Shown here: positions 34,649-61,078 of the stretch, in pieces
Layout of the letters: every line of letters starts with the position of its first letter
Position numbering within the stretch: position 1 is the stretch's first letter
From: Ascidiella aspersa
Taxonomy: Eukaryota
Direction of reading: 5' to 3'
Assembly: GCA_963924565.1 (NCBI GenBank)
Contig: OZ004612.1
Location: forward strand, 2,232,001 to 2,296,000
DNA: 64,000 nt
Made by a program: the position numbers and the translations under genes
The notes under the pieces: model-generated
What the model was told of the DNA's origin: nothing
Seen by the model: the letters and a program-made list of their open reading frames with translations, nothing else
Database searches by the model: none

Positions 34649-37600
34649 TTATTTTTTTGATTTCAAACCACGTCTTGCAAGTTTTATTGTTTTGTCGCAT
34701 TCTTTAATTTTCTCACTCGCCAAAGAATGGTCGATTTTTCTGCACAACTTGATTGCTGTTTTCGAACTCTGCATTGCTTTGTCATATAGCTTCATCTGCA
34801 AATAACATTCACCGATTCCCAAGTGACAATCTGCAATACATATTTCTACTTCTTTATCGGGATCCGACGTCGAGTGAAGTTCGATTTCTTGTTCAAAGCA
34901 TTTCACCGCATTTTCAAACTTACCAAGTTGTTGATACGAACGACCTACATAACAAAACACAAATGTGTATTCTTCTGGTGGAACAAGTTTTATGTGCTCT
35001 TGCCCTTGTTCGAAATAATCAACAACCTGCTTACGTTTGTTTAATGTAAAGCTACATTTAATGAGTTTCCTGAAACATTTTCCAATCATGACATCTATTT
35101 CCACAGTTTGATGAAATCTCAAATACATTCCCAGAGAAGTTTCCAGTGTGTTGTAAGCCTCCTCGTATCTTTCAAGTTGGTTGAGACAAACTCCAGCTCT
35201 TAATTGCGCATCTGCAACTAACTGCATAAAGTAATATCCCTGATGCCCATCACATATGGAGATTGCTTCTTTAATCTGATCTAACGCTAATTTGTAATTA
35301 TTGTTGTTAGCATAATGTATTCCAATACATATATGCATTTCAGCTCTGGCACGAACTTTGCTTCGCTGAAATCGTTTACTTGAGGGGTAGAGCTCATAAG
35401 CTTCCTCATACAATTCACTTACTCGTAAAAAGTTTCCCTTATTTGCCTGAATTTTAGCCCGGAACACTTTGCGTTCAGCAGAAAGATGATGTTTGTCGTC
35501 TGGAACGTAATGCTTACTCTTAGAAATATTTTCCGCCATTTCAATTGCCTTTTCAGCTTCTGTGTAGTTTTCCATCACGGTGTAAGTTTGACCAAGATCT
35601 AGCAACGCAACTGCTGTGTCGTGATCTGAAGTTTCATCGAAGGCCTTCTCATGACATTGAAGTAGAACTTTCTCGCCGTATTCAATGCTTTCTTGGTATT
35701 CACCAAGCTTATAGTAATATCGAGAAACATTTCGTTGTGCATTTATCGAATCATTGTCGTTTATAACAATGTGAAGCATATTGCTGGCCTTCTTAAGGAT
35801 ACCTTCATCAACATACCACCGGAACAAATCGCATTGGACTCTTCGTGCAACCATATTTGTGCTGCTTGAATGCAAAGCTTTTTCGTAGCATTTAATCGCA
35901 TCCAAGTTCGTTCCAAGATTATTGTAACAAAGTCCCATCATAAACAACGTTACAGATCGCTTTGGATGGTGGTCTCCCATATATTCCAATAAATGTTTAG
36001 ATAAATTTAAAGCAAGCTCATGCTGATTAAGTTTGCAGTAACACAAGCTTTCGAAAAGAGAAATGTCTACTTTTCTTTCTTTGAACTTAAATGCATTTCC
36101 GCTTCTGCATTTTTTAATGACATTAATTGCTTCGTTATACAAACTTAAAGACATAAGCGAACGTATAACACGACGCCAAGTTGATTCCTTTGCTTCAGAT
36201 TGCTTGATGGTGAACATTTGCAAATTAGAAGTTAAAGAGAAAAATTCAACAATTCTTGACTTTCCGAAAACTTCCAGCAATAAATCATGAAAAGGTTCGA
36301 ATCTTTTGTCAAGATAATCGCACTGGCCGGAGTATTTGAAGTAAACCCGCAACCTAACTTCACAGGCGAAAGCAAGTGCGAACATAAAATCATCCGATTG
36401 CTGCTGTGATATTTTTTCTTCTAAAGTCAATTCCCGCAGAATATCGAAAGAAGACGACGATTTGCAATTATATCGTCTACCAAGTGCTGCTATAAACAAA
36501 GTGACGCTTCGAAATACGACGCTTTTTATGTTTACTGAGTCTTCTTTAAGCATTAAAGTCAAGCATTTATCTATGTTAAATTTGTCAGTATCCTCCTTAA
36601 GTTGTTTTTCTAGATTCTCATCGAAACAAGGTTGTTGTAAGATGTCAATTGTTTGCATCTTCATTTGATTGTAGATTGCATCATCGCCATAAACAAAACA
36701 TATTTTTGTTAAAATATCGCCCAAGTGGTAACCGTTGTTGAGGTCAATATCTCGTCCTAGATATTCTAACATTTCAGAGACAGGTTTGATCAGCTCAGTA
36801 TCCCAGGGTTTGTTCGGTGTAGCTGACCTACCAAGTGGGAACTTGCAAGCAAAAGTAACCATTCCATCAAACGAAATGCCACGAGGTGTGTGCGCATCAA
36901 AGAACCAGCCCTTACCATTATTTTCCTCTGGATCATTAATGAAAGGCAACGAAACGCGAGGTATTATGGTTTCACCAAAATTTACAACCACAACTTGAAA
37001 CATCACAGACACCCAACGGAAATATTCCAGTATTTCATCGTAATCTGAACGATTTTGAACACCTTCTTCCAACAAATAGATGTGCTCAAAATCTGAATAA
37101 GGAGTGATTTCATTTCTAGCAAGTGATCCCATTCCAACCAAAGCATATTTACAAGGAGCTGGACCTGTAGCTTCCACACAAAACTCCATTATATCTGCCA
37201 TAAGCCGCTTGTATTTTTCTGTGATGATTTTTTGTAAACTCTCTATCAGACTAGCTCTCCGTTGATCGGTTTCTGCAAGTGAAATTGCTTTTAACGCAAT
37301 ATCGTTTATCCAACACCGAAAGTCTTTCAGTTTAGTGACAGATGCTTCAACCAGTTGCTTCAAACTTTCCAGACTGGTGTCATGGCTGCCAGCTAGTTGA
37401 AGAACATGCGAACAAAGCTCATCGAGATCTTTCTTAATCTCAGCAACGTTGTCAGGTTCTCTCACAACAGCTGCATTTAACAACACGGCGCTGCGAATGA
37501 GAGATATTTTCTTGTCTCTACCCTCGGGTAATTCATCAGCTATTTCGTGGTATGCCTGGCCGAGTTGATGGATAACTTTGGCGGATTGCTTTACATCACG

Positions 37601-37699
37601 TTCTTTTCCGTTTGCGTAACATAATGACCTTAATTCCTTTACAATTTCAGAAGTTTTAGCTTCGTAAATACTAGCTTTATTCTCTGAGCACCCTTGCAT
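34649..37699 (-). CDS. NTase-TPR family copy 4; intact 1016-aa GlnD/GlnE/DUF294-like nucleotidyltransferase with C-terminal TPR repeats
   Basis: Uninterrupted 3051-bp ORF; GSLARNEITPYSDFE motif (~37085-37129); helical domain NIK...SSFDILREL...EVRLR; TPR-like units such as LFMMGLCYNNLGTNLDAIKCYEKAL and YVGRSYQQLGKFENAVKCFEQEI. Confidence 0.92.
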   Translation of the reverse strand: MQGCSENKASIYEAKTSEIVKELRSLCYANGKERDVKQSAKVIHQLGQAYHEIADELPEGRDKKISLIRSAVLLNAAVVREPDNVAEIKKDLDELCSHVLQLAGSHDTSLESLKQLVEASVTKLKDFRCWINDIALKAISLAETDQRRASLIESLQKIITEKYKRLMADIMEFCVEATGPAPCKYALVGMGSLARNEITPYSDFEHIYLLEEGVQNRSDYDEILEYFRWVSVMFQVVVVNFGETIIPRVSLPFINDPEENNGKGWFFDAHTPRGISFDGMVTFACKFPLGRSATPNKPWDTELIKPVSEMLEYLGRDIDLNNGYHLGDILTKICFVYGDDAIYNQMKMQTIDILQQPCFDENLEKQLKEDTDKFNIDKCLTLMLKEDSVNIKSVVFRSVTLFIAALGRRYNCKSSSSFDILRELTLEEKISQQQSDDFMFALAFACEVRLRVYFKYSGQCDYLDKRFEPFHDLLLEVFGKSRIVEFFSLTSNLQMFTIKQSEAKESTWRRVIRSLMSLSLYNEAINVIKKCRSGNAFKFKERKVDISLFESLCYCKLNQHELALNLSKHLLEYMGDHHPKRSVTLFMMGLCYNNLGTNLDAIKCYEKALHSSSTNMVARRVQCDLFRWYVDEGILKKASNMLHIVINDNDSINAQRNVSRYYYKLGEYQESIEYGEKVLLQCHEKAFDETSDHDTAVALLDLGQTYTVMENYTEAEKAIEMAENISKSKHYVPDDKHHLSAERKVFRAKIQANKGNFLRVSELYEEAYELYPSSKRFQRSKVRARAEMHICIGIHYANNNNYKLALDQIKEAISICDGHQGYYFMQLVADAQLRAGVCLNQLERYEEAYNTLETSLGMYLRFHQTVEIDVMIGKCFRKLIKCSFTLNKRKQVVDYFEQGQEHIKLVPPEEYTFVFCYVGRSYQQLGKFENAVKCFEQEIELHSTSDPDKEVEICIADCHLGIGECYLQMKLYDKAMQSSKTAIKLCRKIDHSLASEKIKECDKTIKLARRGLKSKK

Positions 37700-40331
37700 G
37701 TTTTAACTGGTTTCAAACTGTTAAAAGTGCAATTGCTGTAAATTAATGGAATACGGATTACAATGAATCGTTTTGTTTACATGGTAACTACACCTATGTT
37801 TTAAAAACAGCCTCTAACATATTTAGCTTATCACATGTTCTTAACTACAAGCAACCAAGTACTACTGACTGTGCTTTAGCCTACATTGTATCAACAGCAC
37901 TACGTTTGGCCGAACAATACAAGTAGGCTGGCTGTGATGTAACAATAAACTATTGTGACGCGTGAATAAATGTGGAACCTGAACCATTGTTTATCGAAGC
38001 GAGCACTGTGCGAACATAATTCCAGTGATGTTTGTTTCAAACTGGAACTCAGACTAAATGCCCAATTCCAAATGTTATTAGAAACACATATCAATGGAAA
38101 TTCTTGTCTTAATGCATCAACCAATTAATATTTTCGTAAATCCGATATATAACGATATAAAGTAACAATATATGGTTTGAAGCGACTAACATTTGATATC
38201 ATTAAAACCTAATTATTGGAAACTTATAACTCTAAAGCTTTCCAGCTCGACTCTCTTTGGATTTCCTCAACTCTATATTAATAAGTGTTAACACAAAACA
38301 TGATGAGATAAGAAATAAAGCGTGAAGTGTGCAGAGATGTAAAGCGACGAAAGTAACTTGAACGAAGAAGCAAGGTTGAAAATAGAAAGGTAAAATAACA
38401 CACAAACAAACGATAAAAACAGATTCAAAGAAAAACTAGAGTTGCCAAATCGTATTGACAGCAAGGTACAAATGAATAACAAAACATAGGAAAATGCAAA
38501 CATTGATTACGAAAGCTTTAATATTAGCCGATTATTAAAATATCGTGATGTGTACAAGTATTATTCAACTCCCAATCCTAAAGTGTTAATTATTTTCCCT
38601 GATTCATTTTCGTCAATCCTGTGAAAGTTGATTCCGATCTCTCTCGCTCTACAGACTCGAGACTTAAGTAAACACAGGGAAGGTGTTACGTAACAATGCC
38701 GAGCGCTGCGCTGTATTGTGACGCGTGCTGCCAAACAATGGCTTCAGTTCTACAAATGTCCGATCGTTGGTATTTTACAAACTCTGGTTCGCTTGAAATC
38801 GCTTGATATTTAACTTGTAAGCGGGTATCTGAACTAACAACAAAGTGAACAAAGTAATATTTTGTCAACAAAACCACCTTTATTCTAGCTACTTCTTCAA
38901 TTTTAATAAGATCTATAGTTTTTAGTTTACATAAAAGGAAGTTGAATCTTTTTATTTAGTTATATCTCAATATAAATTTTTCAATATTTATCAAAATGTC
39001 TCTATGTTCGCTTCTGGTGCGCTTATGGGGGCTTTCCATTGGAACAGAAAAGTATGAGTTGTGTCGTCACACTCTGCGTCGGGCATCCAGTTAAGTATTC
39101 AGTGAACCAATTTCAGACACATTTGTTGTGTAATTATATGGGCCGAAAATTTATTTTCGGGATATTAAGTTTTACCCAATACAAGTTGGCCGGCTGTGAC
39201 GCGACAATACATAGACAATTAGACCTTGAGCCATTGTTTGTCGAAGCGAGCAACGAGCGAGCAACGATCCCAGTGATGTTTGTTTCAAATTGGTTAAAAG
39301 TTTTTTAGTAAATGTTTCCAATTGTTTCTTTCGACACTTAAAACTAAGGCAAAATGCACAACTATTTATAAGTTTAATAAATAAATACATTCAAATGCGG
39401 TCCTGCAATTGGTAACCTACTGTTTTGTTGATTAAATTAAGTTTAAAACTAAAATTACTGCGTTACATCGGAAACAGAAAATCCGATATTAGTTTGGTAT
39501 CGATCCGGCACCGATACCACCTATATTATCGGACGACAACCGATACTACAACTTGGCATCGCGTAAAAGCTCCGGTCGATGTTATCCTTCTGTATTACTG
39601 ACTTTTGCATAATTTTTTACTGAATTACAGGCACTAAAATTGACTTTTCATTAGGTTCACATTTGGAACCCAGTTAAAAAGCAAGTCCTGGCTGATTGAT
39701 TCTCATCGTGAATTTTTTAATTTTCCCGACGACCTTTAACAGAGTGAAGCTTCCAGCTAACTGTGAAGCAACAGCAACAACTTCGTCCTAAAAATCTTTG
39801 TTCCGATCTCTTTCCTTCTACAGACTTAGACTTAAGTAAACAAAGCAAATGTGTTACGTAACAATGCCGAGCACTGCGCTGTATTGTGACGCGTGCTGCC
39901 AAACAATGACTTCCAGAATGTGACGTCATCGATATGCCCGTTCAGTTTGGCTTAAAATCGCTTGATATTTAACTTGTATGCGGGAACAGGCGACAACTGC
40001 TCTACCAACTGAACAATAAACTTTATTTTAATTCTGCAGAGTTTAGCACAATCAACGTTAGTATCATAAAACAAACAAGATTTAGTATCGATTTAATTAA
40101 TTAACAATTTATAAACAACACATTAAAACACTTAAATGTACATTTTCTTTACTTCATACTAATCCTCTTTAAATAAAATATTTGGCGACCGATAATGATT
40201 TACCAATAGGCCACCTTAAAATTTTACACATAAAATTTGATATTTTGTCTGATAAGCGATATTTAAAGACCACTTTAAGTCAATTTGGCCTTTTCATTCA
40301 AAAGGATCACCAGCAATAATTATTAAGAAGT

Positions 40332-40428
40332 TTATTTTTGCACTTTTAAACCACGTCTTGCAAGTTTTAATATTTTGTCGCATTCTTTAATTCTCTCATT
40401 CGCCAAAGGATGCTGGATTTTTCTGCAC
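40332..40428 (-). pseudogene. C-terminal relic of a deleted NTase-TPR copy, fused to the upstream BEL/Pao fragment
   Basis: Reads CRKIQHPLANERIKECDKILKLARRGLKVQK*, matching the end of copy 4; immediately adjacent to GAACGACCCAATATCTTTGGCGCAGC. Confidence 0.8.
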
Positions 40429-40803
40429 GAACGACCCAATATCTTTGGCGCAGCAAGTTCCATGTTAGGCCCATGTCAGCTGCACTTCTGTTTTATAAAC
40501 AGGTTTAACATATTTAAGCCTTCATGTTAGTTTTAATCTCACCCGTAAAAAACAAACGAGTTTAGTAACTAATTTATATAATTACGCAAAACACAGATGC
40601 AACGATGACATAAAATTAAACTGCATACAATGCTAACGAGTGGCACTTTACATGACGAACTACAATATCAACAAGTCGTTGAAATATTGTTATACGGGCA
40701 AAATAATCAAGTTCAACCTAGTGTTGAGATTCAGTGAAATCTGAAGCAAACTTTTTAAAATATTGCCTTTTACAATATTGTGAAACAAACCAAACGTATT
40801 AAC

Positions 40804-42860
40804 TATATAGAGTTAGCTCCACCAGGCAACATATCAATAAATATAAATCGCTCTTCTGGTGTAAACGAAGTATAAACCGACGTTTCGGCAGCAGATACCA
40901 GCTGACCTCATCAGGGTTAAAATTAAAACGAGAGTGCGTTAGCCATCTTATATACTAAGAAGTAAAAAATTGTAAAAACGTAGATTAAAATTAATAATTC
41001 TAGACGTCGCTGAAGTATGCGATAAGCTGTGACGCGCCGGAGTCATCCGGTGCAGTACTGCGCCGTCGGACAACGGGCGTTTATCAGCTATTGCGTATAG
41101 CTACAACGACGAGTAGATTGCCGGATACCATGAATCCTTTTTATTCATGGTGTTAGGAGATTTGTCAATCCGGAATGATTCAATGAACCGTCTTTTGTAA
41201 TAGTGCGGTTCCCAGTCTAGAATTTTACAGTTATCCCAATCAATTCCGTGTCGGAGTTCAACCGCATGATCTGCCAGAGCTGACCGGGATGCCTTTTCGT
41301 GGCGGACATCACGCATGTGTTCGAGTTTCCTGGTATGAAAGGAACGTTTAGTTTCCCCTATGTATGTTGCTGAACAACCTCCACAGGGAATCTCATAAAC
41401 TGCCCCTTGACGTTTTTCTGGTTTGACTGGATCTTTAGTTGAAGGTAAAATATTTCCAATTTTTCTGGCTGGTTTAAAAGCTGTAGAGATGTGGTGGCCC
41501 TTCAAAATGCGTTTTAATTTTTCTCCCAGACCTGGAATGTAGGGAATAATGGCCAGACCTTTAGATTCTGGTTTAGATGTTAAATGGTTGGTTTTGTTAC
41601 GAGGTTTGAACAACCAGTCGGGGTATCCGTTTAATCTCATGGCCTTCTTAACATGTTTAATTTCGTTGCCTTCGTCCTGATAGTTACTGCAAAGTTTTGA
41701 AGCTCGGTGTAGCAGGGAACTCACAACCGAGCGTTTGTGTTGTAAAGGGTGGTCTGATCTGAAATTCAAGTAGCGATCTGAATGTGTTAATTTTCTAAAT
41801 ACCTTGGAAGATAATTTAACTGACCGGTTACGAGTGATTAATGAATCCAAGAATGAAATTGAGCATTTGTTCTCTGTTTCCATAGTGAATTTAATGGTAG
41901 GTTCCAAGCTGTTCAAGTGGTCCAGGAACTGCTGTATCAAGTTTGTTTTTATTATGACAAACGTATCATCTACGTATCTTCGCCACATTCGCGGGGGGGT
42001 ATGGAATGAATTCATGGCCCGTTGTTCGATGTCCTCCATAACCAAGTTTGCCACAGTTACTGAAACCGGTGATCCCATAGCTGTTCCAAATATCTGTTTG
42101 TAATGTTTTCCTTTGAATTTAAGGTATGTAGATTCTAGGCATATAGTTAACCCTTCTAGTATATCATTAATATTAAACTTAGTCCTGTTTTCCAGTGTGT
42201 TGTCTTGGTTAAGACGTTCTTTAGCTACTTGTATAGCCAGGTTAGCGGGGACATTGGTGAACAGGGAGGTAACGTCGAACGAGACCATGCTTTCATCTTC
42301 TTTTATTTGAAAATTTGTAATTTCTTCAACGAAACCAATCGAGTTTTTAACATGATATTCTGTTTGACCTAAAAGAGGGGATAAAATTAAAGAAATACGT
42401 TTAGCTAAGTTATACGTGGGGGACCCAATGAATGAAACAATAGGCCTAAGCGGGATTTCCGGTTTGTGTATTTTGGGTAACCCATAGAGTAATGGTGATG
42501 TAGCATCAGAACTTTTGAGAAGGTTCCATTCATAGTTGTTCACCTTCTCTTCTTTCTTCAGCCGTTGCATGTACCTGTTAAGTTGTTTTTCTATACCTTT
42601 AGTGGGATTAACCGTAACAGGACAGTAAGTGTCCCTGTCTGCCAACATATTGTGAAGTTTATTATCGTACTCAGATTTATCCATAACAACTGTAACATTA
42701 CCTTTGTCCGCCCGTTGAATTACCAAACCTGTGTTATTTTTGAGCTCTTTTAAGGCTTGTTTTTCGTCCGGTTGGAGGTTGGGTTCGATTGTTTTGTGGG
42801 ATTTTAAACCTGAAATAACTTTACCTCTTACCAGATTAGCTTCACCGGGGGGTAATCTCC
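40804..42860 (-). mobile_element. 5'-truncated Penelope-like retroelement
   Basis: RT plus GIY-YIG ORF followed by a 3' region containing a hammerhead; both flanks resume the host duplication unit seen uninterrupted at ~16440-16530. Confidence 0.92.
40874..40918 (-). ncRNA. Minimal type I hammerhead ribozyme in the Penelope 3' repeat
   Basis: Minus strand reads AACC-CUGAUGA-GGUCAGC(UGGUAUCU)GCUGCC-GAAAC-GUC-GGUU: full core, stem I AACC/GGUU, palindromic ACGU stem III. Confidence 0.8.
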
Positions 42861-42903
42861 AGGGATCACCAAGCCATAGCCCGGTACCAGACAAATCAAA
42901 CAT
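41101..42903 (-). CDS. Penelope-like reverse transcriptase with GIY-YIG endonuclease (N-terminally truncated; first ~15 codons are host flank)
   Basis: ADKGN, YGLPKIHKP..PLRPI, SFDVTSLFT, GTAMGSP, RYVDDTF and GAVYEIPCGGCSATYIGET motifs. Confidence 0.92.
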   Translation of the reverse strand: MFDLSGTGLWLGDPWRLPPGEANLVRGKVISGLKSHKTIEPNLQPDEKQALKELKNNTGLVIQRADKGNVTVVMDKSEYDNKLHNMLADRDTYCPVTVNPTKGIEKQLNRYMQRLKKEEKVNNYEWNLLKSSDATSPLLYGLPKIHKPEIPLRPIVSFIGSPTYNLAKRISLILSPLLGQTEYHVKNSIGFVEEITNFQIKEDESMVSFDVTSLFTNVPANLAIQVAKERLNQDNTLENRTKFNINDILEGLTICLESTYLKFKGKHYKQIFGTAMGSPVSVTVANLVMEDIEQRAMNSFHTPPRMWRRYVDDTFVIIKTNLIQQFLDHLNSLEPTIKFTMETENKCSISFLDSLITRNRSVKLSSKVFRKLTHSDRYLNFRSDHPLQHKRSVVSSLLHRASKLCSNYQDEGNEIKHVKKAMRLNGYPDWLFKPRNKTNHLTSKPESKGLAIIPYIPGLGEKLKRILKGHHISTAFKPARKIGNILPSTKDPVKPEKRQGAVYEIPCGGCSATYIGETKRSFHTRKLEHMRDVRHEKASRSALADHAVELRHGIDWDNCKILDWEPHYYKRRFIESFRIDKSPNTMNKKDSWYPAIYSSL

Positions 42904-43890: not shown

Positions 43891-43930
43891 CCCTGACGAA
43901 GGCTTGCCGGGTAGTAAGCCGAAACGTTGG
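43891..43930 (+). ncRNA. Second minimal hammerhead-like motif, probably in a relic Penelope terminal repeat of another family
   Basis: CC-CUGACGA-A-GGCUUGC(CGGGUA)GUAAGCC-GAAAC-GUU-GG; 7-bp stem II but only a 2-bp stem I. Confidence 0.6.
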
Positions 43931-46436: not shown

Positions 46437-49400
46437 TTATTTTTTTGATTTCAAACTACGTTTTGCAAGTTTTTTTATTTTGTAGCATTCTTTAATTTTC
46501 TCACTCGCAAAAGGATGGTTGATTTTTCTGCACAACTTGATTGCTGTTTTCGAACTCTGCATTGCTTTGTCATGTAGCTCCATCTTCAAATAACATTCAC
46601 CGATTCTCAAGTGACAACTTGCAGTAAGCATCGCTAACTCTTTATCGGGATCCGACGTCGAATGAAGTTCGATTCCTTGTTCAAAGCATTTCACTGCATT
46701 TTCAAACTTGGGAAGTTGTTGAAACGAAAAGCCGACATCATAAAATAAATATTTTCGTTTTTCTAATGGAAGCTGTTTTATATATTCTTGTCCTTTTTCG
46801 AAATAATACACAACCTTCTTATGTTTCTTTAGTTTAAAGCTACAGCTAATGAGTTCCACGAAACAACTTTGAATCATGACATCTCTCTTGGTAGTTTTAT
46901 GAAAACCAAAAAACATTCCCAGAGAAGTTTCCAGTGTGTCATAAGCTTCCTCGTATCGATTACGATCAAGTTGGTTGAGACAAATTCCAGCGTTTAATTT
47001 CGCATTTGCAACTAACCGCACAAAGACATGTCCCTGATGTCCATCGCATATGGAGATTACTTCTTTATACTGATCTAATGCTAATTCGTACTTATTGTTG
47101 ATTTCATTATTTACTCCAACACACAAATACATATTAGCTCTGACACGAACTTTGCTTTGCTGAAATTGTTTACTTGAGGGGTAGAGCTCATAAGCTTCCT
47201 TATACAATTCACTTGCTCGTAGAAAATTTTCCTTTTTTAGGTGGATTTTAGCCCGGAACCATTTGCATACAGCAGGGAGATGATATTTGTCGTCTGGAAC
47301 AAAATGTTTACTCTTAGAGATATTTTCCGCGCTTTCAATCGCTATTTCAGCTTCTGTGTAGTTTTCCATTGCGATGTAAGTTTTACCAAGATCCAGCAAC
47401 GCAACTGCTGTGTCGTGATCTGAAGTTTCATCGAAGGCCTTTTCACAACATTGATGTAGATATTTTTTGCCATATTTAATGCTTTGTTTGTAATCACCAA
47501 TTCCACGGTAATATCGAGACAAAAGTAGCTTTGCAGTTTTCGAAACATTGTCGTTTAGAACAAGGTAAATCATGTTACCGACCTTCTCAAACAAGACCTC
47601 TTCTAAATATAATCCCAATAACTTACATTTAACATCTCGCATATCCATATCTGTGCTGCTGGAATGCAAAGCTTTTTCGTAGCATTTAATCGCATCTAAG
47701 TTCATTCCAAGAACATTGTAACAATGTCCTATAATGGACAACGTTACAGGTCGATTTTGATCTTGGTTTCCCAAACAATCCAATGAACGTTGAAAGCACT
47801 CTAAAGCGGTTTCATACTGATTAACTTTAAAGTGGCACATACCTTCATATGATTTGCATGCTTTTTCTTCTTGGAATGCAAATATATTTTTGCTTCTAGC
47901 ATTTTTCATGACGTTCATTGCTTCGTTATACAAACGTAAAGACATAAGCGAAACTACAACACGAAACCAAGATGATTCTTTTAGTTCAGATTGACTGATG
48001 GTGAACATTTGCAAAGTAGAAGCTGAAGAGAAAAATGCAACAATACTTGATTTTCCAAATTCTTCGAGTAACAAATCAGGAAAAGGTTCGAATCTTGCGT
48101 CAAGATGATCACACTGGCGGGAGTATTTGAAGTAAACCCGCAACCTAACTTCACAGGCGAAAGCAAGTGCGAACATAAAATCATCCGATTGTTGCTGTGA
48201 TATTTGGCTTGGAGTCAATTCTCGCAGAATATCGAAAGAAGACGACGATTTGCATATATGTCTTCTACCAAGTGCTGCTATAAACAAAGTGACGCTTCGA
48301 AATACGACGCTTTTGATGTTTACTGAGTTTTCATTATGTATCAAAGCCAAGCATTCATCTGTGTTGAATTTGTCAGTATCTTCCTTTAGTTGTTTTTCTA
48401 GATTCTCATCGCAACGAGGTTGTTGTAAGAAGTCAACGGTTTTCATCTTCATTTGATCGTAGATTGCATCTTCGCCACAAACAAAGCATATTTTAGTTAA
48501 AATATTACCCAAGTGGTAACCGTTCTTAAAGTCAATATCCCGTCCAAGATATTTAGTCATTTCAGAAACAGGTTTGATCAGCTCAGTATCCCAGGGTTTG
48601 TTCGGTGTAGCTGACCTACCAAGTGGGAACTTGCAAGCAAAAGTAACCATTCCATCAAACGAAATGCCACGAGGTGTGTGCGCATCAAAGAACCAGCCCT
48701 TACCATTATTTTCCTCGGGATCATTAATGAAAGGCAACGAAACGTGAGGTATTATGGTTTCACCAAAATTTACAACCACAACTTGAAACATCACAGACAC
48801 CCAACGGAAATATTCAAGTATATCGTCATAATCTGAACGATTTTGAACACCCATTCCAACCAAAGCATATTTACAAGGAGCTGGACCTGTAGCTTCCACA
48901 CAAAACTCCATTATATCTGCCATGAGCCATTTGTATTTTTCTGTGATGATTGTATCAGACTAGCTCTACGTTGATCGGATTCTGCAAGTGAAATTGCTTT
49001 TAACGCAATGTCCTTTATCCAATGCCTAAAGTCTTTTATTTTAGTGACAGATGCTTTCACCAGTTCCTTCAAACTGTCCACACTGGTTTCATGGCTGCCA
49101 GCAAGTTGAAGAACACGCGAACAAAGCTCATCGAGATCTTTCTTAATCTCAGCAACGTTGCCAGGATTTCTCACAATAGCTGCTTTTAACAAAACGGCGC
49201 TTCGAATATATTTTCTTGTCGCGTCCTTTAGTTAGTCGTGCAATTTTTTGATACGCAAGGCCGAGTTTGTGGATGATTTTTGCAGATTTCTGTGGCTCTT
49301 TCTCTTTTCCATTCGCATAGCAGCATTCTTCTGACTTTAAATATTTTGCTAAAGGTTCAGTAAAGCTTGTCAAATATTCAACAGACACAATGTTTCCCAT
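46437..49400 (-). pseudogene. NTase-TPR family copy 5 (MGN-type start); two 5' frameshifts and an in-frame 66-bp deletion of the catalytic motif; residual 828-aa ORF 46437..48923
   Basis: 5-bp deletion at ~49207 and net 13-bp deletion at ~48950 relative to paralogs; YALVGMG|VQNRSDY junction at ~48851. Confidence 0.88.
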
Positions 49401-49564: not shown

Positions 49565-49711
49565 CAACCAAACCGTCGTCAGTATATTCTAATTAATGTA
49601 AATTTCTATTAAATAAAACGTAGAACGAATAATAATTAATCGAATGTTTCTAACTAATCTTAATTCAAAACTTAACTTTGAACATGGTGGAGAAATTTTT
49701 AAGTATATATT

Positions 49712-49819
49712 TTCATCACGTTCCTTTCCGTTTGCGTAACATAATGACTTTAATTCATTTAAAAGTTCAAAAGTTTTACCTTTGCAAATACAAGCTTTAT
49801 TATCTGAACACCCTTGCAT
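49712..49819 (-). pseudogene. Truncated MQGC-type 5' relic upstream of copy 5
   Basis: MQGCSDNKACICKGKTFELLNELKSLCYANGKERDE, then unrelated sequence. Confidence 0.8.
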
Positions 49820-52089: not shown

Positions 52090-52300
52090 TAAAAAGAAGC
52101 GCTTGACTTGGCTACGGCCTTGTTTAACCACGAGCGGAGCAAATCATTGGGCGCCCACAAATGAGAATGGCGGATGGTTGGGCGTGATGCGCTCACGCGG
52201 TAAGTCGGCCATCTTCTCTTGTCCGCTGGCCGCATTTTGTCGGCGGCAGAAAATGCATTTTCCAAGCACTAGTCGTACAGCAACTCCTCCGTGAACGACC
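52090..52300 (-). mobile_element. BEL/Pao integrase fragment within a local ~0.8-kb duplication (~49990-50820 vs ~51500-52300)
   Basis: DNA nearly identical to 50610-50820; left-flanking sequence also duplicated. Confidence 0.75.
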
Positions 52301-54159
52301 GAATAAATATGTCAGCTGTACTTCGGTTTTATAAACAGCTTGACCTTGGTAAAGTAGATTTGCGAAGTAAAGACTTTTATGCTTAACTGGCTTTTTGCAT
52401 TTTTTGCAGGCTACTTAATTAGTCAATCTATTTAAAAAAAACTCAAAACCTGCTTTTCAGGTTATACGTTAATTTTTGACGAAGAAAGGGAAGTAGTTTT
52501 TTTACATTCACCCACTTAAATGTGATAATTTTTTCTACGCCATTCAATTAAATGCCGATTCCAGACAGGCCGTATCCTTATAATGTATTAACCTTGTTGT
52601 GGGGAAGTACTAAGTTAACACATTTTTGACACAATTGTTGTGTAATTTATTATTGGTTTTCTTGGTTTAATTTGCTTCACTGCATTTCACTTCTTGCCTA
52701 ATTTTGTTTTTTTTGCCGTTACACTTTTACTCTCAAAATCACTCATTTGTCTTACTGTTTTAGCTTTGAAGGGACATTCCTTCGATTGCAAACCGTTCTG
52801 TAGCACGAGGTTTGTCCTGTTTTTGTTGTTGTGTTAGATGGTCACAATTTAAAAAGCAAGCGAGCGAGTGTTCGCACAAGAAAAAACCTGGTGACGAAGT
52901 CGCGTCACGCAACCTTTCTACAACGATGGAGTTTTAAAGCACAGTTGAATGCGTACACGAGGTCAGCGACAGGCGTTTGGCAGCGACAAAAACATAACGT
53001 AACGCATTCAAGAGACGACCAGCGCTTTTGCTTTTTTCACAATGTAGGCTATACACGCATTACGTTCATCGTGAAATATAAAGAAAACACATGTCATGAA
53101 ACTTCTCTCTACCGAACGTGTAGCGCCACGTGGTGCAAGGTTTAGGCACAAGAAAAAATGTTATGCCTTTAAAAATAAAGAAGCTATTACGCTTTCCGTA
53201 TAACGTTAAGTTCCATGTTAATTGCCAGATTCATTTCGTATCGGCGACAACACGAGGCTGGCAAATTTACACAGAAATGTTGTTTGCATTTGGTATTCTT
53301 TCTTTGCTCAATCGTTTGTACGCTTGTTGTTATTTTAACTCTTTCTTTCTCACTCACGTTAATTGTATCGCTTTTTAAATTTTGCACCTCACCTTCCACG
53401 CTTTTATTTCTCATTTTAGTACGATTGATTGGCATCGAATAATTAGTTACATTGGCACTTACGCCATTTTTCTCTTCGTCGTGGTGATTCGGAAAACGTA
53501 AACCAATAAAGCAATCTGGTTTTGGGAGAGCTTGTGAAACATTTAGAAACCTTGGGAATTGACGTTTCTGCCACCTTTTTATGCGTTTGCCGATTTTCAT
53601 TGTTTTACTATTTTGTTGTTTTCCTTATCGCTTTTATCGATACAGTTGAACTTGAACAACACGTAAAGTGTAGCGCTTGACATCCTAAAGTAGAGATCCT
53701 ACAGCTTGGCGTAACATTACAAAGTAATCAGTTCTTTTTCCCTGACGAAACTTGATTCATGAGCGTTTTCCTTTTGAAAACTGACGCCATGGAGAAAGTA
53801 ACGAAAAGTAAATAAATAAAAGGACGAACTACCAAGCTTATAAAGTTTGCTACAACTTATTTCTACAGGACGCTAAGCGAATCAATGGTAAAGTCCAGGT
53901 ACCTTTATTATTACAATGTTTATTTTTGAGTCCCGGTGACATTTTTGATTTATATATAAGCAACATATTTTGTTTGCCCAAAGCGTTTGAATGAGTTGCA
54001 CTGAAAAAAAGTTCTGAAACTATATTTTTGCTATGCCATTGTAAATATTTAGAAGGATTTTTTCAGATAAATCTTAAGAGCTTCACAAGTGTCACTTCAA
54101 CCGCTCGATGTGGCCCCTGAGCTCGATTAATTAACCGCGAGCAAGGCTGTCAGAACAAC

Positions 54160-54330
54160 ATGGTTGGTCGTGATGCGCTCACGCGGTAAGTCGGCCATCT
54201 TCTCTTGTCCGCTGGCCGCATTTCGTCGGCGGCAGAAAATGCATTTTCCAAGCACTCGTCGTACAGCAACTCCTCCGCGAACGACCCAATATCTTCGAGA
54301 AGCAAATTCCATGTTAGTTGTAATCTCACC
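54160..54330 (-). mobile_element. BEL/Pao integrase fragment
   Basis: RYWVVRGGVAVRRVLGKCIFCRRRNAASGQEKMADLPRERIT. Confidence 0.8.
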
Positions 54331-56044
54331 CTAAAACGGTACACGAGTTTTAGCAACTAATTTTTCTGAATATGCAACACACAGATGCAATGATAACTGC
54401 TTAAATGCATTAAAAGTATATCCAAGTGCATAACAAAACACGGTAAATGCATGCAATGCTAACGAGTAGAAGTTCAAATGGTAAGCTACCATGTCAAGTA
54501 GTTATAATTTGTTTTGTACAAGAATCAACTTCAAGCCCAAAGTGCTGAGATACAGTGAAGTCTAAACAAACCTTATCCATAATACCACCTTTTATAATAT
54601 TGTGAAACAAACCAAACGTTTTACATATTTATATTCATAATTTTTGTAAATCAGCAATTAACCAGCCACGGACCAGACAAAAACAAATATGATTAGATAT
54701 AAGTTAAATTAAATCAATGGTCTCAAGCCGCTGAACATTTGTGACGTCGCTGCGCACTTTTAGAAAATAATTTACATTTCCTTCAGTATTCCAAGTGTTT
54801 TCACTTTCACTTTTCGTCGCCTAAATACTTTCAGCTTTGGATTTAAATCTGATGCAGCGCTTTTTTCTTTACTGTGTTTTTTTGCTTAATGACCTTTTAT
54901 AATGTCTATGCGAACCTTCTACGTCGAACAAAAATTTTGATCGAATTTGCTTAAATTTATTATATATATTAATATGTATTTAAACAACTTGGTTCCCATC
55001 GTCAAACCTAGGTTTTATATTAAAAGTGAATTAAATGTGGCAATGAGAGAAAATAACTTACGGCGCAATAATGATCTACTTTGGTTAATTTTCAATAAAA
55101 CCGATAAGTTGCTCGCGTTTTACTTCAGCACTGGTTTCGATTTATTGCACGAAACGGGAAAACAGAGTTTACTAAGCAACCTTCTATCGTTGTCCAGGTG
55201 ATCAAGAAATTAATCGTTTTATATTAGTTCGGTTTTACGGGATTAACATAATTAATCTTTGTATACATTTTTGTTATTTAGGGATATTACTTGACTGAGC
55301 AAAGAATCTAAAACCCTTTCGTCAAAAAACACTGCTTTGAAAGCAAACCTTAGATACAACAATAATAATTATGTCGACCTACTGTCTGACGGTAGAGTTT
55401 ATATACAAACTGGTATCGGGTATCGGCTCCATCCGCTATTATCGGACATAGGTTGTTCCACCAAGAAAAACAGATACAACTAAGAAATACAACAGCATTA
55501 AAAGTATATTAGCAAAACATGGTAAATGCTTACAATGCTAACAAGTTTAAACGGTGAACTACATCAACAAGTGGTTGAAATAAAGTAGTGATCTAAACAA
55601 TAACAAATCAACATTATTAGCTTACAGTGTTTAAGTAAAACACCAGGGTGTATCCAAGTATTTAAACAATGTTATTTATGCCAACAAAATGCATACAACT
55701 TTGCAATTGTTCGAAACAGTTATCAACAAAAGTAGATAAAAATGATTTAAAGGTTAAATTAAACTTACAAAAGCAGCAATTCAATCAATATTTTAAATAA
55801 ACTAAGTTGAACCTAAAAAATACGTGCAAGAATTAATCTTGCAGGTTTTTGTGTAAAATCGACGGCTTCATATAGGTGTCACTTCCACCACTCGATGTCG
55901 CCCTTGAGCTCCATTAGTTTACCGCAAATAAATTTCAAACTCAGCAAGCTTTAATGGTCTTAAGCCACCGCATTGAACTACTGCCAGTGAATAAATGACT
56001 AACCCATTACGTTTAGGCACCGATTAGCTTGGATATCCCGTTTG

Positions 56045-56170
56045 CTGATTGGTTAATAGTAGTCACGTGAACAATGTACCTCGCTTTTCAGGGCGCAATT
56101 TTGTGTTTCTCTTTTTAAACAAATTGAACAATTAGCCGCGTTAACAAAGAAACGTCAAAACGTGACGTCA
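56045..56170. promoter_or_regulatory. Candidate promoter module (CCAAT-N11-E-box, CRE), third copy
   Basis: CTGATTGG-TTAATAGTAGT-CACGTG and TGACGTCA at 56163-56170. Confidence 0.45.
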
Positions 56171-58033
56171 AAGGCAGAACCTTAAGAACATCACACATTT
56201 CGTTCATTTGTTAAACTTTAGGCAAGAGAGGTGTTACTTACAACACAAAAGCTACAACGATGCTATGGATTCGTGCATAAAACGCCTCTATGTCGTTTAA
56301 GTTGCCAAAACTTCTAATTTTAAATGTTGCGATGAGGCGTCTTTGGGCTTAAAATATTTAATCAAAATGGATCAAGACCTACATAAAACATAGTTAAGAT
56401 TCGTTCCGAGCGCGAAACATTTGGCATTTTCAAAGTAATTGTCGGCAAAGGCTGTAGTTATTAGGGGGCTATTGTCACGTGCCCCCCCCGGGGCCTCTAA
56501 ACTGATTTTATCTTACAATAAACAATTTCCAAACACCTAGTTCAAAAAAACCTTACTTTGATTTTTGCTGCTAAAAAAGGCAATAAGTTTATTCCCTGCT
56601 AAATTTGAGTTACACTTTTGGGCAAATATTGGATTATTTGCTATAAAAAGCAAACAAGTTTGCAAATCAAAACCCTGTGTATTTATTTGTTTCGTCAAAT
56701 GTCGACGAAGTAGGTTAAAGGTAACAGTTTTGTTTGTCAAATATGCTAACCCACAATACAGTTATTACAGATATTGTTAATTTTTACAAATCCTACAGCT
56801 CGTTGTTGTTTTAAATAGTGATTTTATCTAACTACTTCTAAAAGTGTTTAAAATCGTAGTCGAATAATTTTGTTTGACTCATTTTCGTTCTTTCTGTGAA
56901 AGTTGATTTTGATCTCTCTCGCTTAACAAACGTGAGACTTAAGTAAACAAAGCAAAAGGTGTTACGTAACAATGTCGAGCACTGCGCTCTATTGTGACGC
57001 GTGTTGCCAAACAATGGTTTGAGTTTTACAAGTGTGAGATCCTTAATATTTAACTTGTATGCGGAAATAGGCGACCACTGCTCTACCAACTGAACTATCA
57101 ACAAAGTGAACAAAATAATGTTTACTAAGATCTGTGTAAATATTTAGTTCAAAAAAGCCTTTATTTAAGCCCTGCGCAGTTTAACTGAATCAAGGTTTGT
57201 ATTATAACAACGTGTAGTAAATAGTTTTAATAAAAATGAAAGAAAGTTAAATTTGTTACTGTTTTAATTGAATGACATATTAGGAACAACACAAATATAC
57301 ATTTTTTTTAACTTTATACTGAATATCTTAAAATCACATTTACGCTGTAAATATTCGTTGAAATTCGGGATAAATGATCGAAATATAAACACTACGCATC
57401 TTGAAGCTTTCTATGAGAAAACTAAAAAGTGACAATAAACAGGAATATTTCAAAGTCAATTGGAGGACAAAATCAATTCATCAAATGGAGCACAATGATT
57501 AAGAATCTTTGTATATGGCCGTATGTGTCTAATTCTACAATGAGGAATCAGGTGGTACTGTATAAGGACAAATTGAATTGAATTCTCGACAAGCTTTCGC
57601 ACAACCGTGCTTCCATCAGGTCAAAGTAGAAATGAAAGCAATTAAAATGCACGTAAAAGCAGAAGCGCGAGTAAAAGGCGAAAAGAATGATGACGACTGA
57701 CATATCAACAGGCTTATGCTCGCAAAAATGTGTCAATGACAAAAAAAATTATAATTAGGAAGAAGTTTATTTTTTCGATTTCAAACCTTCTCGCCTCAAT
57801 AATCCTAAAGAATTAGTTGTGCTGATTGGTTATTATTAGTCACGGCATTTTATACAATAAACCTATTATGAACTTTGTATTTTTGTTTAGAATCGTTATG
57901 GCGATAGAAACCTAAAGCAATTAAAATGCACAAGCGCGAGTAAAAAATGGTGGTGTCTAATATATCTATAGAAACATGCTATCAAAAACGTGTAACTGAC
58001 GCAAAAACAAAAAAAATATAATCAAAAATAAGT

Positions 58034-61000
58034 TTATTTTTTTGGTTTCAAGGCACGTCTTGCAAGTTTTATTGTTTTGTCGCATTCTTTAATTTTTTCA
58101 CTCGCCAAAGGATCGTCGATTTTTCTCCACAACTTGATTGCTGTTTTCGAACTCTGCATTGCTTTGTCATGTAGCTCCATCTTCAAATAACATTCACCGA
58201 TTCTCAAGTGACAACTTGCAGTAAGCATCGCTAACTCTTTATCGGGGTCCGACGTCGAATGAAGTTCGATTCCTTGTTCAAAGCATTTCACTGCATTTTC
58301 AAACTTGGGAAGTTGTTGAAACGAAAAGCCGACATCATAAAATAAATATTTTCGTTTTTCTAATGGAAGCTGTTTTATATATTCTTGTCCTTTTTCGAAA
58401 TAATACACAACCTTCTTATGTTTCTTTAGTTTAAAGCTACAGCTAATGAGTTCCACGAAACAAATTTGAATCATGACATCTTCTCTCTTGGTAGTTTTAT
58501 GAAAACCAAAAAACATTCCCAGAGAAGTTTCCAGTGTGTCATAAGCTTCCTCGTATCGATTACGATCAAGTTGGTTGAGACAAATTCCAGCGTTTAATTT
58601 CGCATTTGCAACTAACCGCACAAAGACATGTCCCTGATGTCCATCGCATATGGAGATTACTTCTTTATACTGATCTAATGCTAATTCGTACTTATTGTTG
58701 ATTTCATTATTTACTCCAACACACAAATACATTTCAGCTCTGACACGAACTTTGCTTTGCTGAAATTGTTTACTTGAGGGGTAGAGCTCATAAGCTTCCT
58801 TATACAATTCACTTGCTCGTAGAAAATTTTCCTTTTTTAGGTGGATTTTAGCCCGGAACCATTTGCATACAGCAGGGAGATGATATTTGTCGTCTGGAAC
58901 AAAATGCTTACTCTTCGAAATTTTTTCCGCCATTTTAATGACCTTTTCAGCTTCTGTGTAGTTTTCCATATCGATGTAAATTTCACCAAGATCTAGCAAC
59001 GCATTTGCTGTGTCGTGATCTGAAGTTTCATCGAAGGCCTTTTCACGACATTGAAGTAGATGTTTCTCGCCGTATTTAATGCTTTCTTTGTATTTGCCAA
59101 TTCTACGGTAATATTGAGCAACATAGCGCTGTGTACCTTCCAAAACATTGTCTTTTAAAACAAACTTAACAATGTTACCGGCCTTCTCAAACAAATGTTC
59201 TTCAACATATAATTTCAGCAACACACATTGACCTTCTCGTACATCCATATCTGTGCCGCTTGAATGAAAAGCTTGTTCATAACAATTGATGGCATATAAG
59301 TTCATTCCACGCTCGCAGTAACAAATTCCCATCAAAAACAACAACGTGTAACGCTGCATGTGATTATTTTCTTCCATCAAATCTAACCCACGTTGAAAGC
59401 ACTTCAAAGCGGGTTCCAACAAATTAACTTTGTAATAACACAAACCTTCGAGGGCGAAACTTGGGCCTTTATTATTTACAAACTTAAATATATTTCTGCT
59501 TCTGGATTTTTTTATGACATTAATTGCTTCGTTATACAAACGTAAAGACATAAGCAAAAATACAACACGAAACCAATTTGATTGGTTTGCTTCAGATTGC
59601 TTGATGGTGAACATTTGCAAATTAGAAGTTAAAGAGAAAAATTCAACAATTCTTGATTTTCCAAATACTTCGAGCAACAAATCATGAAAAGGTTCGAATC
59701 TTGCGTCAAGATAATCGCACTGTCCGGAGTATTTAAAGTAAACCCGCAACCTAACTTCACAGGCGAAAGCAAGTGCGAACATAAAATCATCCGATTGTTG
59801 CTGTGATATTTGGCTTGGAGTCAATTCCCGCAGAATATCGAAAGAAGACGACGATTTACAATTGTATCGTCTACCAAGTGCTGCTATAAACAAAGTGACG
59901 CTTCGAAATACAACGCTTTTGATGTTTACTGAGTCTTCATTAAGCATTAAAGTCAAGCATTTATTGATGTTAAATTTGTCAGTATCCACCTTAAGTTGTT
60001 TTTCCAGATTCTCGTCATAACGAGGTTGTTGTAAAATGTCAATTGTCTCCATCTTCATTTGATTGTAGATTGCATCATCGCCACAAACAAAGCATATTTT
60101 AGTTAAAATATCGCCCAAGTGGTAACCGTTTTTAAGGTCAATATCACGTCCAAGATATTCAAGCATTTCAGAAACAGGTTTGACCAGCTCAGTATCCCAG
60201 GGTTTGTTCGGTGTAGCTGACCTACCAAGTGGGAACTTGCAAGCATGTGGCATCATTCCATCAAATGAAATGCCACGAGGTGTGTGCGCATCAAAGAACC
60301 AATCTTGGTCGTTTTCCTGATCATTAATGAAAGGCAAAGCGACGCTTGGTATTATGGTTTCACCAAACTTTACAACCACGACTTGAAACATCACAGACAC
60401 CCAACGGAAATATTCCAGTATATCATTATAATCTGAACGATTTTGAACACCTTCTTCCAACAAATAGATGTGCTCGAAATCTGAATAAGGAGTGATTTCA
60501 TTTCTAGCAAGTGATCCCATTCCAACCAAAGCATATTTACAAGGAGCTGGACCTGTAGCTTCCACACAAAACTCCATTACATCTGCCATGAGCCACTTGT
60601 ATTTTTCTGTAATGGTTTTTTGTAAACTCTCTATCAGACTAGCTCTACGTTGATAGGTTTCTGCAAGTGAAATTGCTTTTAACGCAATATCCTTTATCCA
60701 ACACCGAAAGTCTTTCACTTTAGTGACAGATGCTTCAACCAGTTGCTTCAAACTGTCCACACTGGTGTCATGGCTGCCAGCAAGTTGAAGAACATGCGAA
60801 CAAAGCTCATCGAGATCTTTCTCAACCTCAGCAACGTTGTCAGGTTTCCTCACAACAGCTGCTTTTAACAACGTGGCGCTTCGAATGTAGGATATTTTCT
60901 TGTCGCGTCGTTTTGATATTCGTGCAATTATTTTATACGCTAGGCCTAGTCTGTGGATGACTTTAGCAGATGTCTTGGGGTCTCTTTCTTTTCCGTTTGC

Positions 61001-61078
61001 AAAGCATTGTGACTTTAACTCTTTTGCTAAAGGTTCAGTAAAGCTTGTCAAATATTCAACAGACACAATGTTTCCCAT
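58034..61078 (-). CDS. NTase-TPR family copy 6; intact 1014 aa, MGNIVS N-terminus
   Basis: Uninterrupted 3045-bp ORF; catalytic motif at ~60474-60517; TPR-like C-terminal half. Confidence 0.92.
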   Translation of the reverse strand: MGNIVSVEYLTSFTEPLAKELKSQCFANGKERDPKTSAKVIHRLGLAYKIIARISKRRDKKISYIRSATLLKAAVVRKPDNVAEVEKDLDELCSHVLQLAGSHDTSVDSLKQLVEASVTKVKDFRCWIKDIALKAISLAETYQRRASLIESLQKTITEKYKWLMADVMEFCVEATGPAPCKYALVGMGSLARNEITPYSDFEHIYLLEEGVQNRSDYNDILEYFRWVSVMFQVVVVKFGETIIPSVALPFINDQENDQDWFFDAHTPRGISFDGMMPHACKFPLGRSATPNKPWDTELVKPVSEMLEYLGRDIDLKNGYHLGDILTKICFVCGDDAIYNQMKMETIDILQQPRYDENLEKQLKVDTDKFNINKCLTLMLNEDSVNIKSVVFRSVTLFIAALGRRYNCKSSSSFDILRELTPSQISQQQSDDFMFALAFACEVRLRVYFKYSGQCDYLDARFEPFHDLLLEVFGKSRIVEFFSLTSNLQMFTIKQSEANQSNWFRVVFLLMSLRLYNEAINVIKKSRSRNIFKFVNNKGPSFALEGLCYYKVNLLEPALKCFQRGLDLMEENNHMQRYTLLFLMGICYCERGMNLYAINCYEQAFHSSGTDMDVREGQCVLLKLYVEEHLFEKAGNIVKFVLKDNVLEGTQRYVAQYYRRIGKYKESIKYGEKHLLQCREKAFDETSDHDTANALLDLGEIYIDMENYTEAEKVIKMAEKISKSKHFVPDDKYHLPAVCKWFRAKIHLKKENFLRASELYKEAYELYPSSKQFQQSKVRVRAEMYLCVGVNNEINNKYELALDQYKEVISICDGHQGHVFVRLVANAKLNAGICLNQLDRNRYEEAYDTLETSLGMFFGFHKTTKREDVMIQICFVELISCSFKLKKHKKVVYYFEKGQEYIKQLPLEKRKYLFYDVGFSFQQLPKFENAVKCFEQGIELHSTSDPDKELAMLTASCHLRIGECYLKMELHDKAMQSSKTAIKLWRKIDDPLASEKIKECDKTIKLARRALKPKK

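Follow-up and report, generated by a model that had tools for sequence, protein, structure and literature searches.

Enzymes in which an array of tetratricopeptide repeats (TPRs) is fused to a transferase are known from FICD (HYPE), which carries a Fic AMPylase, and from OGT, which carries a glycosyltransferase. The TPRs of FICD select BiP and those of OGT select its substrates, and both are single-copy conserved genes with no diversifying grooves. The gene family presented in this work was found in a stretch of 64,000 nucleotides from Ascidiella aspersa (contig OZ004612.1, positions 2,232,001 to 2,296,000; hereafter the window) and joins an enzyme half to a TPR half. It would follow the same architectural logic as FICD (PMC8065156) and OGT, in which a TPR array picks the protein substrate for the fused transferase. 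The Fic and GT-B folds are unrelated to the catalytic fold of the family, and the analogy is one of architecture only.

The closest described enzymes are GlnE and the Legionella protein DrrA (SidM), which are the best structural matches, share the same Pol-beta motif and belong with the family in Pfam DUF294. Unlike them, the family is animal-encoded, intronless, fused to a 12-repeat TPR array and present in dozens of copies. We found no description in the literature of an animal GlnE/DrrA-type (DUF294) enzyme fused to TPRs, and PMC3710099 handles DUF294_C purely as a bacterial domain associated with GlnD and GlnE.

A third group of relevant systems, the plant NLR or resistance-gene (R-gene) clusters and the animal NLR expansions, shares with the family a tandem birth-and-death array with pseudogenes and exchange between paralogs, and a conserved signalling or enzymatic part combined with a repeat domain whose predicted ligand-contact face has a ratio of nonsynonymous to synonymous divergence (dN/dS) above 1. 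The family differs from NLRs in having neither a NACHT/NB-ARC NTPase nor LRRs; its repeat is the TPR and its output would be an AMPylase-fold enzyme fused to the sensor. Two accounts of fungal and brown-algal NLR-like proteins (PMC13449251; PMC3341825) present TPRs as a fast-evolving candidate recognition module with diversity-enhancing exchange, although those proteins carry a NOD module and often shuffle near-identical repeat units or exons, while the diversity seen here lies at six register positions and in tract exchange among paralogs.

Six copies of this one intronless gene (c1 to c6, all on the minus strand) were located in the window by tblastn with the 1016-aa open reading frame (ORF) of c4 as query. 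A scan of the whole genome (308-Mb assembly, 75 contigs) gave at least 50 family matches, which with few exceptions share one strand and lie at 0.7-2.4 Mb of the contig that carries the window; these intronless genes form a tandem array to which the window belongs. We consider it likely, with a probability of roughly 0.72, that this tandem DUF294-TPR family, with an enzyme half homogenised by exchange and a positively selected TPR groove, is a repertoire of sensor-enzymes engaged in conflict. At six A-helix positions of the TPR (2, 5, 6, 9, 12, and 13) dN/dS is significantly above 1 throughout the repeats, with the scaffold and the B helices constrained, and the enzyme half is under purifying selection.

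A predicted AMPylase-type enzyme half joined to twelve TPRs

The two intact copies of the window, c4 and c6, and their parts are as follows.

34649..37699, minus strand: c4, intact, 1016 aa, with an MQGC-type leader
37490..37699, minus strand: c4 leader, residues 1-70, MQGC type
36200..37489, minus strand: c4 enzyme body, residues 71-500, predicted nucleotidyltransferase (NTase) core and helical domain (DUF294, AlphaFold2, Foldseek)
37085..37129, minus strand: putative c4 catalytic motif G191-x11-D203-x-E205, GSLARNEITPYSDFE, read from the translation
34652..36199, minus strand: c4 TPR half, residues 501-1016, predicted to hold 12 helix-pair repeats and a capping helix (AlphaFold2, Pfam)
35750..36199, minus strand: c4 first TPR block (R1-R4, residues 501-650), where divergence is greatest
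58034..61078, minus strand: c6, intact, 1014 aa, with an MGN-type leader
60869-61078, minus strand: c6 leader, MGN type
about 59597..61078, minus strand: c6 enzyme part
about 58037..59596, minus strand: c6 TPR half

Judged by its profile match, motif and modelled structure, the enzyme half is a GlnE/DrrA-type nucleotidyltransferase of the Pol-beta superfamily (DUF294), with a predicted fold like that of the AMPylases DrrA and GlnE. Pfam DUF294 (PF03445) matches c4 with 34.6 bits and c6 with 32.5 bits (cutoff 21), and the G191-x11-D203-F-E205 stretch of c4 fits the G-x11-[D/E]-x-[D/E] motif defined for GS-ATase and DrrA (PMC8097203). G191, S192, D203, and E205 are all invariant in 30 paralogs, and across 71 homologs the first three are invariant and E205 nearly so. 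An AlphaFold2 model of residues 1-520, built from a deep alignment that included distant homologs, reached a mean predicted local distance difference test score (pLDDT) of 87.9 and has a helical domain at residues 340-498; in a full-length model made from paralogs alone the enzyme half stayed below 50. With the former model, Foldseek retrieved Legionella DrrA (6yx5_B, E 4.8e-7) and the two adenylyltransferase domains of Escherichia coli GlnE (3k7d_A, E 6.2e-7; 1v4a, E 2.8e-6), these top three having probability 1.00 and template modelling (TM) scores, on the target, of 0.45-0.60, and the next matches having E>0.02. Sequence identity to the DrrA and GlnE structures is 11-14%. For DUF294_C (PF10335), the C-terminal helical, HEPN-like substrate-binding domain of such enzymes, annotations exist on many homologs, but the Pfam search listed no match in c4 or c6 at E<=0.01. 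Named sequences related to the enzyme half come from tunicates (Ciona and Clavelina, 39-46% identity), hundreds of unnamed ones match it as well, and tblastn of c4 against phage records found nothing matching.

In the second half of c4, Pfam reports TPR_12 (97 bits), TPR_1 (77 bits), and TPR_2 (73 bits), and the full-length AlphaFold2 model places 12 helix pairs and a capping helix at residues 507-1012, with pLDDT of about 80-95. The A/B helix pairs carry the small residues typical of TPRs at positions 8, 20, and 27. The 12 repeats are not seen as near-identical to one another.

It had been proposed from the sequence alone that c2 to c6 are close to identical across the NTase and helical domain, that identity falls to about half in the first TPR block, and that the scaffold residues of the TPRs are kept nonetheless, and all of this holds. 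Nucleotide identity among c2 to c6, in 150-nt windows, is 0.85-0.99 across nt 300-1500, 0.65-0.78 across nt 1500-1950 and about 0.73-0.90 3' of nt 1950, one tract shared by c5 and c6 excepted. Between the c4 and c6 proteins, identity is 57% in the leader (residues 1-70), 91% in the enzyme body (71-500), 49% in the first TPR block (501-650), with 34% in the part that had been quoted (541-575), and 70.5% in the remaining TPRs (651-1016), and the two agree at 55 of 72 scaffold positions (7, 8, 11, 20, 24, and 27 of the repeat) vs. 24 of 70 concave positions. The strong divergence of the first ~70 residues, where two leader types are found, was absent from that reading. The same profile appears among the 30 intact genome copies (990-1035 aa, broken copies being left out) on which the paralog comparisons are based, with mean identities of 89.6% (residues 71-500), 56.9% (501-650), and 68.7% (651-1016).

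Averaged by the Nei-Gojobori method over the 435 pairs of these 30 copies, the enzyme half (residues 71-500) has a dN of 0.052, a dS of 0.151 and a dN/dS of 0.35, the first TPR block a dN of 0.277 and a dS of 0.426, and the remaining TPRs a dN of 0.185 and a dS of 0.291; for the whole TPR half the values are 0.210, 0.32, and 0.66. The sequence-only reading had set against itself the case in which dS rises in step with dN, dN/dS stays at or below 1 and variable sites fall at random. The data depart from that case: from the enzyme to the TPR half dS rises about 2-fold and dN about 4-fold, and the variable sites are strongly non-random in their placement, with a regional dN/dS still below 1. The dS is greater in the TPR half than in the enzyme half in 95% of pairs. 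The rise in silent divergence does not come from the way it was estimated, since 4-fold sites (first two codon bases shared) show the same contrast, with 0.098 in the enzyme half vs. 0.208 and 0.154 in the two parts of the TPR half; when only columns whose 4-fold codon family is invariant are counted, the values are 0.095 vs. 0.233 (0.167-0.233 in the TPRs overall). Biased gene conversion was also considered, but GC content at third codon positions (0.356, 0.346, and 0.325 by region) differs too little between the halves to argue for it.

Selection on the predicted groove positions of every repeat

To compare equivalent positions we anchored the TPR register on the small residue of the B helix, position 20, which falls at B-helix start +3 in 12 of 12 repeats (residues 524, 563, 601, 638, 671, 715, 760, 805, 848, 892, 931, and 975). 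The six positions with the highest mean entropy are 9 (1.99), 2 (1.94), 6 (1.89), 13 (1.80), 5 (1.64), and 12 (1.47), while the scaffold is of low entropy at positions 20 (0.09), 8 (0.64), and 10 (0.52); position 20 has a dN/dS of 0.04. Magliery and Regan (PMC1261162) reported TPR positions 2, 5, 9, 12, 13, 33, and 34, on the concave face, as the most variable, and positions 2, 5, 6, 9, 12, and 13 as those through which TPR1 and TPR2A of HOP touch their peptides. Our six highest-entropy positions coincide with that ligand-contact set and, by canonical TPR geometry and this literature, would line the concave groove.

The alternation of near-invariant scaffold positions with variable ones every 3-4 residues also bears on whether the pattern could be an artefact, that is, whether misaligned repeats or chimeric or collapsed copies mimic both hypervariability and mosaics. 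Repeat proteins misalign easily and tandem families are hard to assemble, which would make such an origin conceivable, but the alternation fixes the register, indels are few (1074 alignment columns for about 1016 residues), the window contains no N, and 30 copies have full-length open frames. Moreover, many short contigs of high depth from two independent runs (X1 and X2, library type unknown) lie over c4 and reach into its TPR half at >=98% identity. We regard an artefact of alignment or assembly as scarcely credible.

The test of selection was made on an a priori class of 70 codons at register positions 2, 5, 6, 9, 12, and 13. Since the classes are interleaved every few codons and share their local genealogy, the comparison between them is insensitive to conversion tracts. 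With tree-free pooled Nei-Gojobori counts, this concave class has a nonsynonymous proportion (pN) of 0.351 and, relative to the regional TPR dS, a dN/dS of 1.52 (bootstrap 1.25-1.80), compared with 0.49 for other A-helix positions, 0.47 for B helices and 0.63 for inter-repeat loops; the enzyme half, relative to its own synonymous proportion (pS), has 0.35. Binned by the pS of the pair, the concave ratio is 2.4 (<0.12), 1.8 (0.12-0.2), 1.6 (0.2-0.3), and 1.2 (>0.3), a drop with divergence that is expected from saturation.

Likelihood estimates were obtained with our own code for the MG94xGTR model, using a separate IQ-TREE tree for each 75-codon segment; the code, which is neither PAML nor HyPhy, was checked by simulation. 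The concave class has a dN/dS of 2.42 (likelihood-ratio test, LRT, against 1 = 61.9, p=3.6e-15), with position 9 on its own giving an LRT of 56.5. Other A-helix positions (0.68, LRT 22.4, p=2.2e-6), B helices (0.68, LRT 23.8, p=1.1e-6), and the enzyme half (0.48, LRT 129.6, p=4.9e-30) fall below 1, and the N-terminal extensions of the A helices lie above it (1.56, LRT 7.8, p=0.005). Shortening the segments to 40 codons gives a concave estimate of 1.95 (p=3e-11) and using one tree throughout gives 2.58; repeat by repeat it is 1.44-5.6 in 12 of 12 repeats, the rest of the repeat being mostly at 0.4-0.9. Tree misspecification caused by recombination is not the source of this signal, since in simulations neutral sites yield 0.88-1.00 whether the tree used is the right one, a wrong one or a mixture. 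Even the five window copies alone give 1.5 for the concave class (c4 vs. c6 about 1.9), 0.55-0.59 for the other TPR positions and 0.25-0.37 for the enzyme.

In a grid empirical Bayes analysis, 2dlnL for beta>alpha was 115.5 in the TPR half vs. 6.7 in the enzyme half. Its 86 FUBAR-like sites with P>0.9 are liberal calls made with unregularised weights, for which reason the strong claim rests on the a priori class test; they comprise 38 of the 70 concave sites vs. 47 of 438 other sites (Fisher p=2e-15). The sequence-only reading had placed diversifying selection on a ligand-binding surface of the TPR half and the variability in its first block. The first part is borne out at the concave positions (1.5-2.4) and not for the TPR half taken as a whole, where the ratio stays below 1; as for the second, R1-R4 are indeed the most divergent, but the selected surface spans all 12 repeats.

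One could still suppose that constraint is merely relaxed, with a tolerant solenoid drifting while purifying selection and conversion conserve the enzyme, and with no positive selection at all. In keeping with this, the TPR half as a whole has a dN/dS of 0.66, its dS is also raised about 2-fold, and, measured against the pS of its own codons, the concave class has a dN/dS of 1.12 with an interval (0.83-1.51) that includes 1. That own-codon synonymous rate (0.323) is probably inflated by multi-hit codons, which is why the interleaved regional dS and the likelihood model were used as well. Drift, however, cannot raise dN/dS above 1, yet the concave class stands at 1.95-2.58 by likelihood (LRT p<=3e-11), above 1 relative to the interleaved regional dS, and at its highest in young pairs. 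Relaxation also leaves unexplained that exposed B-helix positions are not variable (maximum mean entropy 1.22 vs. 1.5-2.0 on the A face) and that empirical-Bayes calls fall on 56 of 202 A-helix vs. 16 of 175 B-helix sites (p=3e-6). We consider relaxed constraint on its own very improbable.

Exchange between copies and the two leader types

Signs of recombination are found in both halves of the gene, with the pairwise homoplasy index (PHI) test giving p<0.001 for each of them and 27-39% of site pairs failing the four-gamete test. With permutations made within each region, an unusually long shared tract (p<0.05) was found in 89 of 435 pairs for the enzyme half and in 220 of 435 for the TPR half, about 22 being expected by chance. 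A GENECONV-like permutation over the whole gene, which had concentrated the tracts in the enzyme half, was discarded as biased because enzyme sites are lower in heterozygosity. The domain junction, at residues 499-514, is where several of the longest shared tracts end, and dS shows no correlation with genomic distance along the contig.

The clearest tract inside the window joins c5 and c6.

58096..58907, minus strand: c6 exchange tract inside the TPR half, with its partner in c5
46500..47307, minus strand: c5 exchange tract, partner of c6

Over these ~800 bp, inside the TPR half, the two copies are 97-100% identical (0.97-1.00 across nt 2248-2990 of the alignment), compared with 66-95% per 150-nt window elsewhere in the gene, a pattern that we read as a recent exchange. 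As c5 is probably a pseudogene and c6 is intact, broken copies may take part in exchange with live ones, either as donors or as recipients. Homology between c5 and c6 reaches from the stop codon to a point about 0.5 kb upstream of the ATG and no further, and the flanks of the copies are alignable in patches only (about 200 bp at 76-80% identity).

More telling for the enzyme half are the two leader types, MGNIVS... in 10 of 30 copies and MQGCS... in 20 of 30. Over residues 1-70 they differ by a dS of 2.08, and the leader tree has one change of type; from residue 71 onward the between-type dS is 0.086, vs. 0.067-0.092 within types, and approximately unbiased (AU) tests reject monophyly of the MGN copies for either half of the gene (p=2.5e-6 for the enzyme, p=2e-5 for the TPRs). 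The two leader types are ancient and share one homogenised enzyme body, since beyond the leader the types are no further apart than copies of the same type. Exchange keeps the enzyme half similar among copies, with a coalescence about twice as recent as that of the TPR half. Homogenising conversion of the enzyme half, as suggested from the sequence alone, is thus supported by the leader comparison and the AU tests, but exchange is not confined to that half and occurs among the TPRs too.

One way to put these results together would be that exchange acts across the whole coding region and that the enzyme half is homogenised where purifying selection keeps the copies alike and tracts do no harm. 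Among the TPRs, divergence would reduce the efficiency of exchange and/or selection would purge homogenising tracts, leaving an older silent divergence.

The leader types are shuffled relative to the gene body. MGNIVSVEYL... matches the N-myristoylation pattern G-x-x-x-S and MQGCSDNK... does not; judging from these patterns, the two types may send copies to different compartments.

Possible roles, state of the copies and neighbouring elements

The family is not an NLR, for neither NACHT nor NB-ARC is present in c4 or c6, and it only evolves like one; the resemblance to NLR and R-gene clusters suggested from the sequence alone therefore applies to the evolutionary mode and not to the protein family. 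The Pfam search of c4 and c6 gave no match to NACHT, NB-ARC, LRR, Death, TIR, or Fic. The mode itself is that of R-gene clusters: a tandem array with pseudogenes, exchange between paralogs and a predicted recognition surface where dN/dS exceeds 1.

Because selection sits on the canonical ligand-binding positions of every repeat and the catalytic half is conserved and homogenised, the architecture translates into a testable hypothesis, in which the TPR groove would be a recognition surface in evolutionary conflict and the enzyme its output. The groove would bind a peptide or protein ligand, with specificity driven to differ among paralogs, and the TPR array would do the sensing or targeting and thereby direct or gate the fused enzyme, which would probably transfer AMP (adenosine monophosphate) or another nucleoside monophosphate (NMP) to a hydroxyl group of a protein. 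On this view the family would be a repertoire of sensor-enzymes, encoded in the germline and engaged in host-parasite or self/non-self conflict, driven by pathogens, symbionts or non-self. Register positions 2, 5, 6, 9, 12, and 13 in R1-R12 offer concrete residues for mutation or swap, and c4 and c6 make a natural pair of paralogs for comparing binding and activity.

A bolder version, which we put forward tentatively and hold to be possible but doubtful, is that the family is a third, undescribed class of animal AMPylase/NMPylase acting as a germline-diversified receptor repertoire, whose grooves recognise pathogen, symbiont or allogeneic peptides and in which binding directs or unleashes nucleotidylylation of a target or signalling partner. 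Were it true, an NLR-like immune logic would have been built without a NOD module.

The positive selection could also have a quieter origin, in which copies have partitioned substrates for housekeeping by sub- or neofunctionalisation and each groove is tuned to a different endogenous protein, with no conflict or immunity involved. Positive selection after duplication fits the same dN/dS pattern, substrate choice directed by TPRs is documented for FICD (PMC8065156), and Pfam finds no Death, TIR, or NACHT domain in c4 or c6. Dozens of tandem copies, frequent pseudogenes and continued exchange speak against such a partition, as does the fact that the youngest pairs have the highest dN/dS (2.4 at pS<0.12), which points to ongoing diversification rather than to a finished division of endogenous targets. 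A further hint comes from DNA run X14 (another individual under the same species label, about 6x), which has nearly no reads >=98% alike over 34906-36113, in the c4 TPR half, or over 37624-38378, in its 5' flank; the 3' flank of c4 has normal depth (about 6x) with fixed differences. This gap could correspond to allelic hyperdivergence or to presence/absence variation, and the lack of >=98% reads on the TPR half would fit high variation within the species. The partition for housekeeping fits the young-pair dN/dS and the pseudogene turnover less well than conflict does, and we think it unlikely.

The reading that we prefer, an exchange-homogenised enzyme with a positively selected groove in a repertoire engaged in conflict, also has points that weigh against it, in addition to the liberal site calls and the observations compatible with relaxed constraint. 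The concave placement of the six positions comes from the canonical TPR register and the literature rather than from a three-dimensional structure, and the tests cover 30 intact family members. Constraint on silent sites, and not more exchange, could account in part for the twofold lower dS of the enzyme half. An immune or conflict role would follow by analogy only, and a sampling of about 6% of RNA run X15 gave a single read on c4.

The remaining copies of the window are listed here.

3..1100, minus strand: c1, the N-terminal 366 codons, cut by the window start; 90% identity to c4 by tblastn
11611..14643 (tblastn 11632..14643), minus strand: c2, full-length, with one in-frame TAG between the ORFs 12358..14643 and 11611..12285
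20509..23542 (tblastn 20533..23542), minus strand: c3, full-length, with a frameshift near 22236-22275, two ORFs in different frames and a 2-nt alignment gap
46437..49361 (tblastn 46458..49361), minus strand: c5, with at least 2 frameshifts and a 66-nt in-frame deletion

Copies are born and die, as three of the five complete window copies (c2 to c6) are broken. From their sequences c2 and c3 are probably pseudogenes. The 66-nt deletion of c5 takes out the catalytic GS...DxE motif, and its translation lacks SLARNEITPYSDFEHIYLLEEG; since gaps of 5 nt and 13 nt and changes of frame also lie upstream of its 828-codon ORF, c5 is probably a pseudogene and not an intact decoy. The spaces separating the full copies hold three short orphan fragments of the family, at 15010-15267, 40335-40457, and 49610-49819; two of them correspond to the N-terminal 74-88 codons and one to the C-terminal 41 codons.

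The window is AT-rich (GC about 0.31-0.41) with few long ORFs, which gives it a eukaryotic look. Between c4 and c5, at 41101-42903 on the minus strand, there is a 600-aa ORF that looks like a Penelope-like retroelement, given its RVT_1 domain and a C-terminal GIY-YIG-like stretch, YEIPCGGCSATYIGETKR. A T-rich satellite of ~102 bp is found at 4311-5135 and 63012-64000, a few kb upstream of c1 and c6, respectively, and a 257-aa K-rich "ORF" at 63042-63815 sits within the second of these arrays. Finally, 2930-3782 and 5500-6220 hold a satellite of 28 bp x 30 and a GT-rich 22/253-bp array in which GC and AT skews are strong.

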